A stretch of DNA of 64,000 nt from Lepidodermella squamata (lineage: Eukaryota; Animalia; Gastrotricha): assembly GCA_047495785.1 (NCBI GenBank), contig JBLDXI010000014.1:186001-250000 (forward strand), in the 5' to 3' direction. This document shows positions 3,001-12,487 of this stretch, piece after piece; position 1 is the stretch's first letter, and each line of letters opens with the position of its first letter. Below the pieces are notes generated by a model. That model ran no database searches. It worked only from the letters and a program-made list of their open reading frames with translations, and had not been told where the DNA came from. The position numbers were made by a program, and so were the translations under genes.

Positions 3001-4955
3001 CTGGTATCGGCGAGGAATCGATATTATAACAAACCTGCGGGTGTGTCCTGGCACAGTTGCTCACAGCCTCCGTTTTTGTGGCGGCACGACGCCGTGACCT
3101 CGGCCACTTCGCGGTTGTAATCAATGCGCACAACTGTCGGCGCGCGCTGATTTTGCCGCTGTTGCTGGCTGGCTACTTTCGGTGCTCGATCAGCTGCTGC
3201 AAAAGCACAACAAAAACAACACATTGCGATCATTCCGCTATATTATGTTCATCAATTATTCATCGGTAAACATCAATAAAACGACAAAAAATCATCAGCT
3301 CACATGCGGCCGTGCGGCTGGACAACAGCGCCGCAGCCGGCGGGGCAGCGGCTTGGGGAGCAGTCGGTGATTTCGTGACGTTGCTAGCCACAGTCGAGTT
3401 TCCATCACTCTGAAGACAGGTCCTGTCGTCGTCTTGCAACGTGTAACCGGCGTAACACTGGCACGAGAACGAACCGACGGTGTTTCGGCAAATCTGGGAG
3501 CAAGTGCTCGCCCGCTCATCGTCCTCAGGCTCACTTTCCTCCATGCTATAGATTCGGATAGGTTTGAATTCCGGCTGCCCGTCCATTTGCTTTTTCTCAA
3601 CACACTCGTCCACGTCTATATAAAAATTATATTAAGTGAGCAAATTTGGTTCAAAATTGAGATCTCCCTTAATTTTCTGTTGCATTTAATTTGTATGATT
3701 ATTTAATCGCTAACCCTCGCAAGACCGTTTGTCAGCAGCCAGTCTGAATCCGGGATAGCAGTCGCAGATGACTGACTTGCGTTCCGACGAGGTGAAGTAC
3801 TGCCGGCGGCGGCATATGTGAGCGCAGCCGCCGTTGTGAACCGAACAGCTGTAGAAGGGCGCAGCTGACGACGACGCCGCCTCGTCGACAAAGGCCAGCG
3901 TCGTCGTCTGCGTCGCGGCGACTGATGGCGCCGGAGTCGACACGCTGCGATTCCCGACGAGAGTGTGAGTGACAAGGTCGACAATTTCAACCGGTTCACC
4001 TGAATCAGTAAATTAAAAAAAAAGCTGTAAAAAATTCTGCAGAAATACCAATGCAGGAGAGGCCATCGGGAGCGAGGCGTCGGGGCAGTTTACATGAGCA
4101 AAGGTAACTGCCGAACGTATTCTGGCATTGCTCTTGGCAGCCGCCGTTGTTTTGGGCGCACTCGTCCACGTCTATGCTGCATGTTTTGCCCTGAAGGCCA
4201 GGTCGGCAGCGGCACCGGTGACTGAAAATTCCGGGCCGGCAAAGTGAGGCGAATCCGCACTCGGTGTTGTCGCACGACCGGTAAGGGCAGCCAAAGTCCT
4301 GCGAGCCGACGCGAAACCAGCCGCGGCAGCATGACGGCTCGGCGATGACCTCGGGTATAATAATCGGCTCGAGAGTGTCGTAATAAATTAATCTACAAAT
4401 AATTAGGTAAAATAGAAATATGAGATAATGCTCAACAAACTTTTGTTCCCGCTTCAGACACCCTACGCCGTCGGTTTCCTCCTCGCTGCCGGTACAATTT
4501 TGAGACCGATAGGTTAAATAAGGACCCGGTTTCGATTTACGGCAAAGCTTCCAATCACGCCTCAGTTGAATCGATTTGCGCTCGCAAACGTTTGGCCTGT
4601 AAAAAAGTTGGGTAAAATCAGAAAACAATTCGATTGTACGATTCTCTTACATTCCATTGCTTAGCCTGCGAGGCGAAGGTGTTCTTTGGTATGAACGACG
4701 GGTGGCATATCCATAAGGTAGTTCTTCATCTTCGGAAACAGGTGAATCCCAGAGAGGATGCTGCGGGTCGTCGTACGAGATAACTTCCTCGCCGCCGCTA
4801 TCAACTAAAGCCGGCTCGAGGTTATCGGGTTCGTTTTCTTGCTTTTGAGAAACACTCGGCTGCTTCCAAAAGCCGTCGCCATTTACGGGAAGGATAATTA
4901 AAAATTGAGCAGAAATCATCACCGTGAGAACCAGATTCATTGAGCGGTAAATCAT
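1..4955 (-). CDS. MEGF6: Multiple EGF-like domains protein 6 (signal peptide, EMI domain, cbEGF repeats, laminin-type EGF repeats); multi-exon, 3' part continues beyond the left edge
   Basis: ATG at 4955 (aaaaaaATG) gives a signal peptide [29 protein letters not shown]-like PNVCERK...SCCRGW, then [41 protein letters not shown], further cbEGFs (DIDECAEN...[12 protein letters not shown]) and laminin-type EGFs ([10 protein letters not shown]...[13 protein letters not shown]) in successive GT-AG exons. Domain order matches MEGF6. Confidence 0.85.
1560..1575. repeat. (CG)8 alternating tract in a MEGF6 intron
   Basis: cgcgcgcgcgcgcgcg read directly; a similar tract lies near 9951-9965. Confidence 0.9.
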
Positions 4956-7900
4956 TTTTTTGATAATGAGATGATTAGGATAGTCGATAAAGTTACAGAA
5001 GATAATCACCTCACTAAGGATCGATTTCGCTGAGTTCGGCGTGGTAACTTTAACATAATAATTAATTAAAACTGTGATCTAGGAAAATGCGAAAAGATGA
5101 ATTAAGATTCGGAAAACAAGCATTAGAACTGTGCGAGGGATTTATGTTTTGGTTCAAGTAAATGGTCTGTAAGAGAAGCGGCACTTGAGCTCAGATAACA
5201 AGGGTTGAGAAATTTCAATACGCCACCGCACATTTCACCTGTGGAATAATTTGTTTAAAAACACCGGCGCAGATTAAGGTGGGTGGTTTTGTTTGCGCAG
5301 TTTTTGCCGGCTCGTCGCGTGTCACCTGAATGGCCGCGCTCGGCCGCGCAGAATAGAAATTAATTAGGGCGCGCGCGGCGAACGGCACGCGCGCGTCGAG
5401 CAGGCCTCGATTGTTGTCGAGCCGGGCTGGAGAGCAAATTTTTTGCCCGGCACCAGGGCACTTGACGCTGACATGCGATTCGGCGCGCTCCAAGCACGCC
5501 GCCGTCGCGATACCTTTGTTTACAGCTCGCTAATTAGCGTAAACACGCCCGGTCGAGGGCACGGCGATAACAATAAACAACAGAGAGAGCGCGCTCGTTC
5601 ACATAATAACAGAACAACCGAAAATAACCGGTAGCATGACCGCGGAGATATATTCTGTAACAGCAATAAATAATGATTATTTACCGGCGGACAAAGACGG
5701 GCGCCTCTCAATGGCGAAATTACGACGTGAACAGCGAGGAAGAAAAAGAGCGCATCATCAGCGCATGCGCAAGTCAACAAACGCGCATCGCCAGTCGCAG
5801 TTTTTCAGCGACGCCAGGCGGGCTAAGCCGATTTTACGGCGCAAAATAACAGCGACAACGACGTCATTGCTTGGCTGGTATATGCCGGAGGAATTAAATC
5901 TGAGACATTTTACGGGCGTTGCGCAACCGTGTCAGGTGGTGTTGTGTGGTACTTACTTTATCTACTCGGCACTTGGCCTGTGAAGACGGCACCTGGCCGA
6001 ACTTTTGGCTCGCCTTATCGCCGGAGCTGACACTTGGCGACGTTAAATTTATCGCTACCAGTTTTAATTGCCGCCCGTCGAGTAGTTCATGACCAGTTGA
6101 CAACACTTGTGCGCGAAGATCACGGCGCTACCTGGTTGTAGGCTACTACACCACAAACCAAAACTCGGGATTGACGCCGGGGAGAGATACGGTGCAAAAC
6201 ACGGGCAGAAGTAGTAGTTTATTGCTGTGTTTATTACTGTAATCTCAGAGTAAATAAACAAGTGTGACTTGGGCGACTGCGCAATGCACTACGTTTCAGA
6301 TGAACCGGGCGCGGCTCGGCGTCGCCGAATGCCACGCTACACCGCGATAAATGCGCGAATGCTCGAGCCAGGCACGTCGCGGCATGTAATAAGCCACGCG
6401 CTGCCATCGACTTCGCGAGACAAACCGCTTTATTCTGCTCCGCGAAAATTTCAGGACTCTTTCTTTATCATTAAGGAGGTAACAGCTTGTGAGATGATGA
6501 AAGCATTATACTGGAAAAATCCCTGTTCAAGTCTGTCAATTCCATCTGGAAATCTAGACAAGTCGTGAGGCAAACCGATATTGAAAGAATAATTTCAAGT
6601 TTCCATTTAATTTTTATAATTAAAAAATGAAAAACTATCCCAGCTCGATTGAACCTGACACAAGTGCTAAGTTCATCATGAAAAATTAATCGATGCTGTA
6701 TGGATGACTGTCGAACTTATAGTTTGTACAATCCAATATAGCCACCCTAACCTTTGACATGATTATAGTGGCGGGTGGCGGATCCTTGAACAAACTTCCA
6801 AGTGAACCATAGCTCAAAAATGCATCATAGTGTTTTTACCTCGCACTCCTCAATGCACAATTTGGGAATTTAATTGTCAAATTTTTTTCCTCCAACTCGC
6901 GTGTAGTATCGCTATAGTGATGGGTTTCGGATGGCGCTGAGGCAGAGTAATTTCCCTACTGCAGTTCATTACTGGGTTCACATTATACTCAGCCACAATT
7001 GGATGGCGATCTCTAAGACCAAGTACACGTACCCTAGAGCATTGTTTTTTTCATCGTTAAAGTAACTGTATCATCGTTGAAGTATAATGCAGAGATGAAA
7101 CCCTCGTCGCTGCCCACACATGACAAAGTCGTACTTGACAATCATCACTCTTTACTTCCAACAACGAGCTCAAACATCGTGGGCGAGTGGTTCAAAAAAT
7201 GACTTCAAACATGTTATTAAAACGGCTTCAGCTGCTACAAAATAGTACATGCAGCACCGGCAAACTTTGCGGCAACAACAAATCTGCACCGAAACGTTCT
7301 GCTTTGCCAATGAGCCAATTCAAGGCCTCGGTTGTAGTCACCGGCGAAAAACCGATTCTGATTTTCGCCCGAGCTTTCAATTTTGAAGTGTTTGAATTCT
7401 TCTCAGAACCCAAGTGCTTGAAGCGTCCAGGCAAACACTACAGAGCACTTGCCATTTTCAAGTTATTTACCAAAAAACTAAAAATCAATTGCAGCTTCGT
7501 GTATCGAACCCAGGACCACATGTGGCACACCCATGTATCTGAACCACTGCGCCACGCTTTACTGTAACAGAAGTAGTACAATTACGCCCTTATATAGTTA
7601 ATTTTTAATTTTGAAATTTTCAAGGTTTCTCAGATTCAAAGGTTAAAGCAGGTCACGCCTTTCAATAATGTCCATCGTCGGGTTTATTTATAAATTTTTT
7701 CATGAAATAATTTGGAGCGTTTGTTGCCCTTTCGTTTCTATTCATGAGACGTACTATAGTACTATGTTTCTATTAGCTCTAATCGAAAGACGTAATGAAA
7801 TGCTGGAATCTGGGATGCTCCTAACTTGGCCGAACTCGTCATAGCTTCTGTGTTTTCTTGCCATATCGGAACAACACCCATCGAGATTATACAATATAAC

Positions 7901-8227
7901 ACAGTTCATATTATAATAGTTCAAAGTTCAGGGCTTTTTACTTTAAAAAATGAAGCCGTGTGCGCAGGTGCGCAGGTGCGCAGCAATCACGCGATATCAC
8001 TACGAAAAACTAAGCATATGGCATAATTCCTTTTATGAAGCTGGCATATCGTCATAATGAGCTTTTTCCTTTCTACTGTTAACCATAAACAGTGCTCTAG
8101 TGGCGGTTGTTATCTCTATACAGAAATGCGCAATTATCCGGAAATTATAAAATTATTTGATTCATATATACCTATATATTTATTACTAATTCAAATGCTA
8201 TGTCTAAGTATTTTCCGTTTTAGAAAA

Positions 8228-9058
8228 ATGAATGATAATGAATTCAAAATCAGAAATAGCAGTACTGCTGATAATTCTGAGCTGGCTTGTGAATTTGCTG
8301 AATATTCTACTCCTCCGGTCTATGAGAAAGGCCGTACTCAGCTGCACTGGGCTGCCGCGAAGGGCTGTCTCGATGCGGTTCGGTATTTGTCATGTCGCTT
8401 CCCTGAAGAAGTTAACCTGCACGATGGCAATCGCAGTCAAACCCCTATCATGCTGGCAGCTGAAAATGGGCATCTGTCCATAGTAATATTTCTATCAACG
8501 CATTGGCCAGAGACAGTTTATGCAACCGACATTTTGGCTCAAACCCCGGTTATACTTGCGGCGAAAAATGGTTGGATGAGGGTGGTTCAGTACCTCACGC
8601 GGCAATGTCCGGACTGCTTGGTGGTGACAGACAGTCATAGACGAACGCCGGTCCTGTGGGCAGCGGCGAAAGGCCACTTTGGCGTCGTCGAATGTCTCAC
8701 GAGTTACCGCCCCGATTCGATTCAGATCGCCGATTGTTACAAGCGCACACCGTTGGCCTGGGCTGCCATGAACGGCCATTTTGAATGCGTTAAACTTCTG
8801 CTGGCAGAATGGCCAAAGGCGGCACTTATCGCCGATGAACTGATGGGCCAGACGCCGCTGTCGCTCGCAGCAGAGCGTGGCCTTATCGAAGTAGTACGGC
8901 TTTTGTTGAAATCGGCGCCTTCAGCAGCGAGCCAGCTCGACTTGCGGGGCGAAAGTGCATTAACGCTGGCGTCGAAAAACGGCCATCTACGGGTTGCTCA
9001 GCTGATAACCGCTCTGACTACAGCGAAGAGCAAAAGCCATTCCGAAAGTTCAATATGA
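8228..9058 (+). CDS. Ankyrin-repeat protein (7 repeats), intronless CDS
   Basis: Repeats GRTQLHWAAAKG, QTPIMLAAENGH, QTPVILAAKNGW, RTPVLWAAAKGH, RTPLAWAAMNGH, QTPLSLAAERGL, ESALTLASKNGH. Likely start is ttttag|aaaaATG at 8228; the ORF part from 8057 is AT-rich and intron-like. AATAAA follows the stop. Confidence 0.85.
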   Translation: MNDNEFKIRNSSTADNSELACEFAEYSTPPVYEKGRTQLHWAAAKGCLDAVRYLSCRFPEEVNLHDGNRSQTPIMLAAENGHLSIVIFLSTHWPETVYATDILAQTPVILAAKNGWMRVVQYLTRQCPDCLVVTDSHRRTPVLWAAAKGHFGVVECLTSYRPDSIQIADCYKRTPLAWAAMNGHFECVKLLLAEWPKAALIADELMGQTPLSLAAERGLIEVVRLLLKSAPSAASQLDLRGESALTLASKNGHLRVAQLITALTTAKSKSHSESSI

Positions 9059-10517: not shown

Positions 10518-12487
10518 ATGGTGACTGGGAGCCGCCTCACGTTGACGCGGCTGGTAGGGTGTCTGCTGCTGGGCGCGGCTACGGCGCTGGCGGTCGAATC
10601 GGCCTACGACGGCGTGTCGAACATGATTAATAACGGACGGGCCGACTACTCGCTGAGTGACACAATCGACGCGGGCGCGACTTCCGACTACGGCTCGCAG
10701 CAGACCATCGACCCGGTGTCGAGCGAGACCGAACTGCAGCCGAAACAGGCACCCCGGCGCAAAGTTTTCGGCATTGGCAGTTCGGCGAGCCGCGACATCC
10801 GCGAGACCATTGGCGGATCGTCAACCGGCGCCATCCCGGGCGCAGATGTTCGTTTCTTAACAAAAATGATGAAAATCATGCTTTAACATTTTTTAGGGTG
10901 GAGCCGCCTCGACAGGAACCTGTGATGCTGCTTGCCAGTGTTGGACCGAAGTCGGCCCAAGAGTAGGCCGAGTTGTCTTATAAATCAACGAAGCTATATG
11001 CAATTTCATTATAGGGCCCTCCTGGACCGCCCGGACTTGGTGTGCCTGGTTCCCAGGGCCCACCTGGCCCCGAAGGTGCTCGAGGTGCTGTTGGTCCTCA
11101 AGGTCCGTCCGGAACATCCGGAACTGACGGATCACCTGGCCCTAAGGTAACTTGAATAATCGAGGAAACTTGATGACATGTAATTTTGTTTATAGGGTGA
11201 TAAAGGAGCGAAAGGAGATGCAGGCCTCGCTGGTGCTGCCGGAGATCCTGGCCGAGCTGGCTTACCGGGCCCCAGTGGCCCACCTGGCATTCCGGGTACC
11301 CCAGGAAAAGACGGCGACAAGGGCCGTGATGGCCGTCCTGGCTGTCCTGTTAGTTTTCTTAAATTCCTAGATGGTGCTATTTTGGTTGAAACAATACATT
11401 AACGTGTATGGTAACTATATAGGGTTCAGCTGGTCGCCCTGGCCCTCGTGGTGATCCCGGTCCACCTGGCACCCCTGGTCCCGCTGGTGCTCCTGGCGGT
11501 TGCTGCAACATGTCAGTCCCGTATATGGCCACCGCGCCGCCCCCATCAGCAACTACGACGCAAATGATGACCACTTTAAGGACTATCACTGAGAATGCAT
11601 GTGCCCTGCAGAACGTGCCGACGCCTTACGCGCGCCACTCGCAGCGCAAAGACCCGCCAGACTGCCCGTTCAACCAGACTATGCTGTGGAGCGGTTTCAG
11701 TTTGCTGCACACCGAGGACGAAGGCCGAGCTCACGTGCAAGATCTCGGCTTGCCAGGCTCATGCCTTCAGAAGTTCGACCCTATGCCGTTTATGTTCTGC
11801 GGCCTTAACCAGGTTTGCAACTGGGGCGACCGTACTACTACGTCGTACTGGTTGGCGACTGACGAGAGGCGGCGTCTGCAACAGCTGTGGGGCATGGACG
11901 ACTCGCGAGAGGCGCCGATGGATTCAATCGAACAAATCCTCCAGCACATCTCTCGCTGCGCCGTCTGCGTGTCCTCTGGCCCTGTCATCGCCATTCACTC
12001 GCTGGCGTCGAGCATTCCCGACTGCCCGGATATGTGGAAATCGCTGTGGACAGGCTACAGCTTTGTCATGGTCTGTTATTCGAACTGATTTAGTAGATTA
12101 TTTGAATGAATAATTTCGAATTAGCATGGCGTTGGTGTGATGGGAGGTGGCCAGCCGTTGAGCAGCCCTGGCAGCTGTTTGGAAAGCTTCTCGTACAATC
12201 CTTACATCGAATGCACGGCTGAAGGCACCTGTCACTATTACTCGGAGAAGATGATGTGAGTCCTAGATACGGCTGATTGATACATTTTATTTGTTTCTTA
12301 TCAACACAGGTACTGGATGCTCGCCTTCGACAAGGTGTCCGTCGGCCAAGCCCGGCACATCACTGTTATGAAGCGCGAGAACGTGACCGACAAGGTCAGT
12401 CGGTGTCGCGTCTGCCAGATGGACGTGGCCACGCAGTGCGAGCGCACGCGCACGCAACGACTCACCACCTCTGTGCCTACATTCTAG
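10518..12487 (+). CDS. Short-chain type IV collagen-like protein (about 545 aa; signal peptide, about 40 Gly-X-Y triplets, two-repeat C4/NC1 domain)
   Basis: Exons 10518-10847, 10897-10962, 11015-11146, 11196-11348, 11423-12070, 12125-12255, 12310-12487, all GT-AG and in frame. NC1 motifs RHSQ...LWSGFSLL...[10 protein letters not shown]...PFMFC...SYWL...ISRCAVC, then IAIHS...[10 protein letters not shown]...[14 protein letters not shown]...IEC...GTCHYY...VSRCRVC. Confidence 0.92.

Follow-up and report, generated by a model that had tools for sequence, protein, structure and literature searches.

An expressed gene for a predicted short-chain collagen IV in the gastrotrich Lepidodermella squamata, and its proposed mode of assembly

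The DNA stretch analysed here (the window) comprises 64,000 nucleotides of the gastrotrich Lepidodermella squamata (assembly GCA_047495785.1, contig JBLDXI010000014.1, positions 186,001 to 250,000, forward strand) and contains, at 10518-12487 on the + strand, a single gene for a short collagen that ends in an NC1 domain of the collagen IV type. The gene has seven exons, all with GT..AG borders, and its coding sequence of 1638 nt specifies 545 amino acids followed by a stop. In order, the product comprises a predicted signal peptide, a cysteine motif, 40 Gly-X-Y triplets, the sequence GGCC, a Thr/Pro-rich spacer and a two-repeat NC1. An earlier interpretation made from the letters alone (the sequence-only reading) had described a chain of 545 residues with about 40 triplets, one GL interruption, the motifs CDAACQC, GCP and GGCC, a spacer and a two-repeat NC1, and each of these elements could be located. 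Their positions in the window are given below, together with the support for each; X1 is a public run from 2015 that yielded spliced contigs.

10518-10592, +: predicted signal peptide of 25 aa (basic start, hydrophobic core, A-x-A end), read from the sequence; hydropathy peak of about 2.3 over residues 13-26
10593-10847, +: N-terminal non-collagenous stretch, the rest of exon 1; no Pfam match; X1 RNA contig record 1 covers from 10554
10897-10962, +: exon 2, with the C-x3-C-x-C motif CDAACQC (10921-10941) and then the first helix triplet; both splice joints in X1
11015-11146, +: exon 3, with 14 triplets and the G-L imperfection (11033-11038); Pfam Collagen, 1.4e-06
11196-11348, +: exon 4, with 17 triplets, ending in G-C-P (11340-11348); Pfam Collagen, 2.8e-09; joint 11348 to 11423 in X1
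11423-12070, +: full exon 5; GT..AG borders
11423-11506, +: start of exon 5, with the last 8 triplets, R-G-D (11447-11455) and GGCC (11495-11506); sequence and motif positions
11507-11629, +: Thr/Pro-rich spacer separating the helix from the NC1, about 40 residues long; contains one Cys (ENAC, 11591-11602) and an N-x-S sequon
11627-11971, +: NC1 repeat 1 (C4), HSQ at 11636-11644; PF01413 over exon 5 residues 69-183, E 3.6e-42
11825-11854, +: ten residues corresponding to the chloride-site loop (residues 74-83), with R76 retained and Thr in place of D78; alignment with human alpha1
11864-11920, +: conserved insert in the loop that bears Met93 in canonical chains; about 10 extra residues relative to human alpha1
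11972-12070, +: start of NC1 repeat 2, with HSL in place of the second HSQ (11996-12004); end of exon 5
12125-12255, +: exon 6, middle of NC1 repeat 2, with E175 kept and Glu instead of Arg at position 179 (12206-12232); PF01413, 6.3e-11; both joints in X1
12310-12487, +: exon 7, end of NC1 repeat 2, with Lys 11 residues before the Cys222 equivalent (12368-12388), an N-V-T sequon, an extra Cys and the stop; sequence

Searches were run exon by exon. The Pfam Collagen profile matched exons 3, 4 and 5, and the C4 profile (PF01413) matched exon 5 with 143.6 bits and again exons 6 and 7. The helix consists of exactly 40 Gly-X-Y triplets and a single G-L imperfection, amounting to 122 residues or approximately 35 nm, and 17 of its Y positions are occupied by proline. 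One cysteine lies inside the helix and cysteine motifs stand at both of its ends, while two further cysteines beyond the 12 canonical ones are both outside the NC1 domain. Elsewhere in the 64-kb window neither strand holds a run of six or more Gly-X-Y triplets. The RGD near the C-terminal end of the helix has similar counterparts in the paralogs C24:472488 and C15:2008398 and is also kept in an ortholog described below; chance is possible for such a motif in Gly-X-Y sequence.

Spliced contigs from X1 have introns 1, 2, 4, 5 and 6 removed exactly as modelled, which confirms five of the six introns by transcripts, intron 3 being 49 nt long. Unspliced DNA contigs from run X3 span the entire stretch and hold no extra sequence. 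Because the X1 contigs skip these introns precisely and the X3 contigs cover the locus without additional sequence, we conclude that the gene is transcribed and that no collagenous region has been collapsed. Extra collagenous exons, a concern of the sequence-only reading, are absent from the X1 contigs at the five introns spanned; intron 3 has no spanning contig. A further joint, from 11454 to 11685, was considered as a splice form and rejected: this 230-nt skip has non-canonical ends (TC..GC), is anchored by only 23 letters on one side and appears in both RNA-like and DNA runs, and is most likely due to cross-mapping of a paralog contig.

An ortholog was found on two metagenome contigs from other samples (L013 and L014), with matching helix length, imperfection site and cysteine motifs. 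The stretch encoded by exon 1 is conserved only in its last 17 residues; exon 2 shows 82% identity, its cysteine motif being identical in both copies present on L013. The helix exons of 44 and 51 residues are of equal length in the ortholog, with 75% identity in exon 4, and the G-L imperfection occupies the identical place in both L013 copies. GCP, GGCC and RGD are all kept, the insert in the Met93 loop is almost identical, and in exon 6, 42 of 43 residues are the same. The exon layout is conserved except for two intron changes: exons 6 and 7 form a single exon there, and exon 5 is split by an extra intron. The fusion and the extra intron provide independent confirmation of those exon borders. 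The intron gained by the ortholog sits inside the conserved insert, and the one lost there is that between exons 6 and 7. On L013 the ortholog is accompanied by a tandem second copy (4857-6426 and 7612-8675), which has no GGCC and a longer last helix block. Upstream of the gene, no synteny was found between the window and the metagenome ortholog contig.

Comparison of the window gene with its ortholog gave a synonymous divergence (pS) of 0.84, which is saturated, and a non-synonymous divergence (pN) of 0.11, falling to 0.01 in exon 6. Conservation is highest in the NC1 (pN 0.01-0.10, versus 0.16-0.24 for the helix). The gene is thus real, expressed and under purifying selection.

The NC1 domain closely resembles that of canonical collagen IV. 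Repeat 1 matched human and bovine alpha1 NC1 at E 5e-48, with much of the alignment identical, and all 12 canonical NC1 cysteines align with those of human alpha1; the first HSQ is present and the second reads HSL. By sequence, this is a bona fide collagen IV NC1 carried on a 40-triplet helix, and the gene is a short paralog of true collagen IV. Several residues at the trimer-trimer interface are changed, as can be judged from the roles in the chloride switch assigned by Cummings et al. (PMC4878091). R76, which forms the main salt bridge across the interface, and its partner E175 are both kept. D78 and E40, which hold the switch 'off', are Thr and Gly respectively in this chain, while R179, which touches the chloride, and N187, which makes a networked interaction in deuterostomes only, are both Glu. 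The stretch from SYWL to ISRC measures 31 residues here and 21 in human alpha1. HMMER aligned Met93 to a Glu, and a Met follows two residues later, inside the inserted loop; at the Lys211 position there is a Lys exactly 11 residues before the Cys222 equivalent. Three residues after this Lys there is an N-V-T sequon (12377-12385), which the ortholog has in identical form and the paralogs lack. The loss of Asp from the chloride motif and the insertion at the Met93 region, both noted in the sequence-only reading, are therefore real, yet the former is common to a whole clade of short chains and the latter, of about 10 residues, to an eight-member subclade of it, as described next.

A profile search of the genome (121.2 Mb in 151 contigs) returned 59 C4 matches at about 20 loci; a search of the same contigs for COX1 gave no mitochondrial gene. 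Two of these loci are long canonical collagen IV genes, one on C11 with at least 456 triplets and one on C14 with at least 386 triplets, which extends past the stretch fetched. The latter lies 183 kb downstream of the short gene and holds the only other C4 match on the same contig, so that the absence of a neighbouring partner gene, as had been claimed, is correct for the window, the nearest C4 locus being 183 kb off. The two long genes (G000:C11:1375610-1381615, L025; G000:C14:380763 to beyond 385999, L027) are not head to head; the C14 chain has the ASRND motif and a Met at position 93, and the C11 chain reads AQRTD and lacks this Met. The search also recovered a peroxidasin-like candidate, in which an animal haem peroxidase comes after four Ig domains and no LRR or vWC parts were seen, as well as two Duox genes (peroxidasin-like and Duox loci: G000:C29:183032-186867, L023; G000:C55:478929-483584, L021; G000:C29:1746813-1751520, L022). 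Full-length collagen IV and a candidate peroxidasin are hence both available in this genome. The proposed link between the short chain and reduced basement membranes finds no support, since the long chains and a candidate peroxidasin are retained. The short gene is an addition to ordinary collagen IV, not its replacement.

A maximum-likelihood tree, limited to the NC1 stretch within one exon, placed 13 short-chain loci, including this gene, together with four metagenome proteins in one clade (96/100), within which the gene is sister to seven other short chains (95/94). Outside this clade fall the two long chains, the collagen IV sequences of vertebrates and arthropods, and the short alpha(IV)-like predictions of amphioxus and Physella. 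Both long chains of the genome group with canonical sequences, while the short gene groups with neither alpha1-like nor alpha2-like chains. The closest relatives, and the members of a distant clade of matches, are mostly metagenome or Logan proteins. By its NC1 sequence, therefore, the gene belongs to a lineage-specific clade, which comprises at least 13 short chains and exists beside two ordinary long chains.

The interface changes are distributed over this clade. Within the genome only the two long chains have D78. R76 is found in 14 of the 15 chains, and all repeat-2 matches carry E175 apart from that at the very divergent locus C24:370918. The insert, with a conserved acidic-basic core, is common to the eight-member subclade, and a Lys at the 211 position is found in most clade members. 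Other features are more restricted. Among the loci examined, the N-terminal C-x3-C-x-C and GGCC occur only in this gene and in the L013 copies or ortholog (GGCC being missing from the second L013 copy). The Thr/Pro spacer, about 40 residues long, is likewise confined to the gene and its ortholog; in the paralogs helix and NC1 are about 12 residues apart. The helix was rated the shortest among the examined loci having one, those of the others running from about 35 to about 140 triplets.

Some loci of the family have unusual arrangements. Two tandem genes on C2 (G000:C2:1044512-1045369 and G000:C2:1046131-1047012; L036 6512-7369 and 8131-9012) are candidates for stand-alone NC1 genes: in both, the first open frame is a signal-peptide-like stretch that leads straight into the NC1, and both belong to the same eight-member subclade as this gene. 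The 10 kb containing them hold no Gly-X-Y run of four or more triplets. Fidler et al. (2017) regard genes of this stand-alone type as unique to ctenophores. At two further loci NC1 units are closely spaced on one strand: at G000:C42:4105925-4113637 (L034) three collagen genes stand in tandem, and at G000:C43:311537-313877 (L039) a single collagen stretch is followed by two NC1 units with a spacing of 1.3 kb.

These features suggest a possible course of assembly. The NC1 domain would bring three chains together, as expected by homology given that all 12 NC1 cysteines are present, and the 40-triplet rod of about 35 nm would then wind from its C-terminal end. Interchain disulfides at GGCC and at the N-terminal C-x3-C-x-C would lock the rod, by analogy with the cystine knot of collagen III and with nematode cuticle collagens. 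The flexible and probably glycosylated Thr/Pro spacer would tether the NC1 cap to the rod while giving it freedom, and two such caps would join head to head via an interface private to the clade, which would keep the R76-E175 bridge and would be devoid of the 'off' latch (D78, E40) and of the chloride-contacting R179. In canonical hexamers the Met93 loop crosses the trimer-trimer interface; here the insert would fill this loop. The predicted outcome is self-pairing within the clade with weaker dependence on chloride, and the likely product would be a short dimer of trimers or a fine network, which probably does not mix with the collagen IV network of the basement membrane. We infer from homology and analogy that the chains trimerise, that disulfide knots lock them, that the interface is private to the clade and how it responds to chloride; a changed mode of assembly is a reasonable and plausible proposal. 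Taken as a whole, with this mechanism included, we think it probable that the gene encodes a secreted short-chain collagen IV paralog of a lineage-specific clade.

Several points weigh against this interpretation. None of the X1 contigs spans the joint of exons 3 and 4, at the 49-nt intron 3, or the 5' end of the gene. A sulfilimine link may or may not form, as the Met lies two residues off the Met93 position, and a glycan at the N-V-T sequon could hinder head-to-head contact. The 40-residue spacer is unlike anything in canonical chains, and the NC1 may consequently not nucleate the helix directly.

Three other explanations have to be considered. An error, whether a collapsed collagen repeat, a wrong gene model or a decaying pseudogene, would be a natural suspicion for an assembly made from multiple-displacement-amplified and hence chimera-prone DNA (PMC11660948). 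However, the independent transcript contigs of 2015 are spliced as modelled, independent DNA contigs contain no extra sequence, an ortholog of equal length is present on two metagenome contigs that come from other samples, and strong purifying selection acts on the intact reading frame, so that we regard an artefact as extremely improbable. The gene could also be a member of the spongin short-chain collagens (SSCC, 'spongin-like'), a described family found throughout the invertebrates, in which case it would represent nothing new. SSCCs have been reported from sponges to amphioxus and are absent only from Ecdysozoa and vertebrates (PMC5395295, PMC12549020). The shared architecture, a short helix followed by a collagen-IV-related NC1, and the wide occurrence of the family speak for this, as do the short predicted 'collagen alpha(IV)-like' proteins of amphioxus and snail held in databases, at 44-46% identity. 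Nevertheless, SSCCs are truncated collagen IV variants with a derived NC1, in which four cysteines are missing, three cysteines are the family's own and HSQ is lacking (PMC5395295; see also PMC12549020), whereas the NC1 described here has all 12 cysteines and the first HSQ. Furthermore, sponge SSCCs are undetected by PF01413 (PMC12749355) and the cnidarian Atlas cluster named 'short-chain collagen C4-like' has no PF01413, in contrast to the 144-bit match in this gene. In the tree, moreover, the gene stands apart from the short chains of amphioxus and of the snail. Membership of the SSCC family therefore appears unlikely to us.

The remaining alternative concerns function. The NC1 could serve only as a handle for trimerisation, possibly to be removed later, and the product would then be a 35-nm mini-collagen, disulfide-bonded at both ends, in a cuticle-like or adhesive matrix. 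Nematode cuticle collagens, which are cross-linked by Duox-type enzymes, and the minicollagens of cnidarians are the models for such a product. Cysteine motifs at both helix ends and one Cys within the helix would suit this role, as would the long flexible spacer, which is particular to the gene and its ortholog and uncouples the NC1 from the helix, and the presence of two Duox genes in the genome. However, the NC1 is the most conserved part of the chain, as would be expected of a domain with a lasting function more than of a propeptide that is discarded, and the spacer shows no dibasic cleavage site. We consider this explanation quite unlikely, a little more so than membership of the SSCC family, and retain the short-chain collagen IV paralog with a working NC1 as the preferred one.

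For this gene alone the gain is modest, as it is a well-supported variant of a protein type already known. According to reviews, invertebrates possess two collagen IV chains, and only ctenophores have large expansions and NC1-only genes (PMC5395295). The paper describing the Lepidodermella squamata assembly does not mention collagen (PMC11660948), and our search of the literature on the gastrotrich basal lamina found nothing useful. Here a bilaterian micro-invertebrate has about 13 short chains with a canonical NC1 and two candidate NC1-only genes beside a normal long pair. It is conceivable, although we offer this only as a tentative idea and think it unlikely as a whole, that the clade constitutes a second collagen IV assembly system apart from the basement membrane, with a private and largely chloride-independent interface around the insert, which would build a fine matrix, for example cuticle-associated or adhesive, with stand-alone NC1 domains as possible chain terminators. 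If this were true, a gastrotrich would have evolved independently a diversity of collagen IV so far described only for ctenophores. If the altered residues change the dependence on chloride or on the partner, the family would constitute a natural series of variants for the choice of NC1 partner and for the chloride switch.

Comparison with known systems places the gene more precisely. In the C-terminal cystine knot of collagen III, adjacent cysteines lie right at the end of the triple helix, and in nematode cuticle collagens clusters of cysteines flank a short helix; these are unrelated families, which provide an analogy only for the roles of GGCC and C-x3-C-x-C. With the SSCCs (Aouacheria et al. 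2006; Nematostella spongin-like 1-4) the gene shares a short helix with a C-terminal collagen-IV-related domain and the occurrence beside true collagen IV, and it differs from them in having all 12 cysteines, the first HSQ and a strong PF01413 match, a separation based on the published descriptions of SSCCs. The alpha(IV)-like proteins predicted in amphioxus (398-822 aa) and Physella acuta (556 aa) are similar in size and combine a short helix with a PF01413-type NC1, the 44-46% identity extending over NC1 repeat 1; they are automatic annotations that fall outside the clade of this gene, and we found no study of them.

Ctenophore collagen IV (4-20 chains; Fidler et al. 2017) likewise represents a large lineage-specific expansion of chains with a true NC1, with unpaired genes and changed cross-link residues, and it includes stand-alone NC1 genes, of which the gastrotrich genome has two candidates. 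The gastrotrich chains differ in having no NC2 domain and no cysteine loop, and they are much shorter. The window itself holds genes for Cys-loop channels and rhodopsin-type receptors, and the presence of Cys-loop channels and of a peroxidasin-like gene indicates that the animal is not a ctenophore.

Canonical collagen IV has approximately 1400 collagenous residues with many interruptions and an N-terminal 7S domain that forms tetramers. The chain described here has no recognisable 7S domain, exons 1-2 having no Pfam match and presenting C-x3-C-x-C before the helix, as judged without direct comparison with 7S sequence. In contrast to canonical chains, the helix is made up of 40 triplets rather than about 450 and has one imperfection rather than about 20, a spacer of about 40 residues separates helix and NC1, no partner gene stands head to head with it, D78, E40 and R179 are replaced, the Met93 loop has about 10 extra residues and the gene falls in a separate clade. 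What it shares with canonical collagen IV (human alpha1/alpha2; 1LI1, 1M3D) is the two-repeat NC1, the 12 cysteines, R76, E175, the Lys at 211 and an imperfection in the helix. The label 'short-chain collagen IV' given to it in the sequence-only reading is thus upheld by the NC1 homology, the transcripts and an ortholog with an equally short helix.

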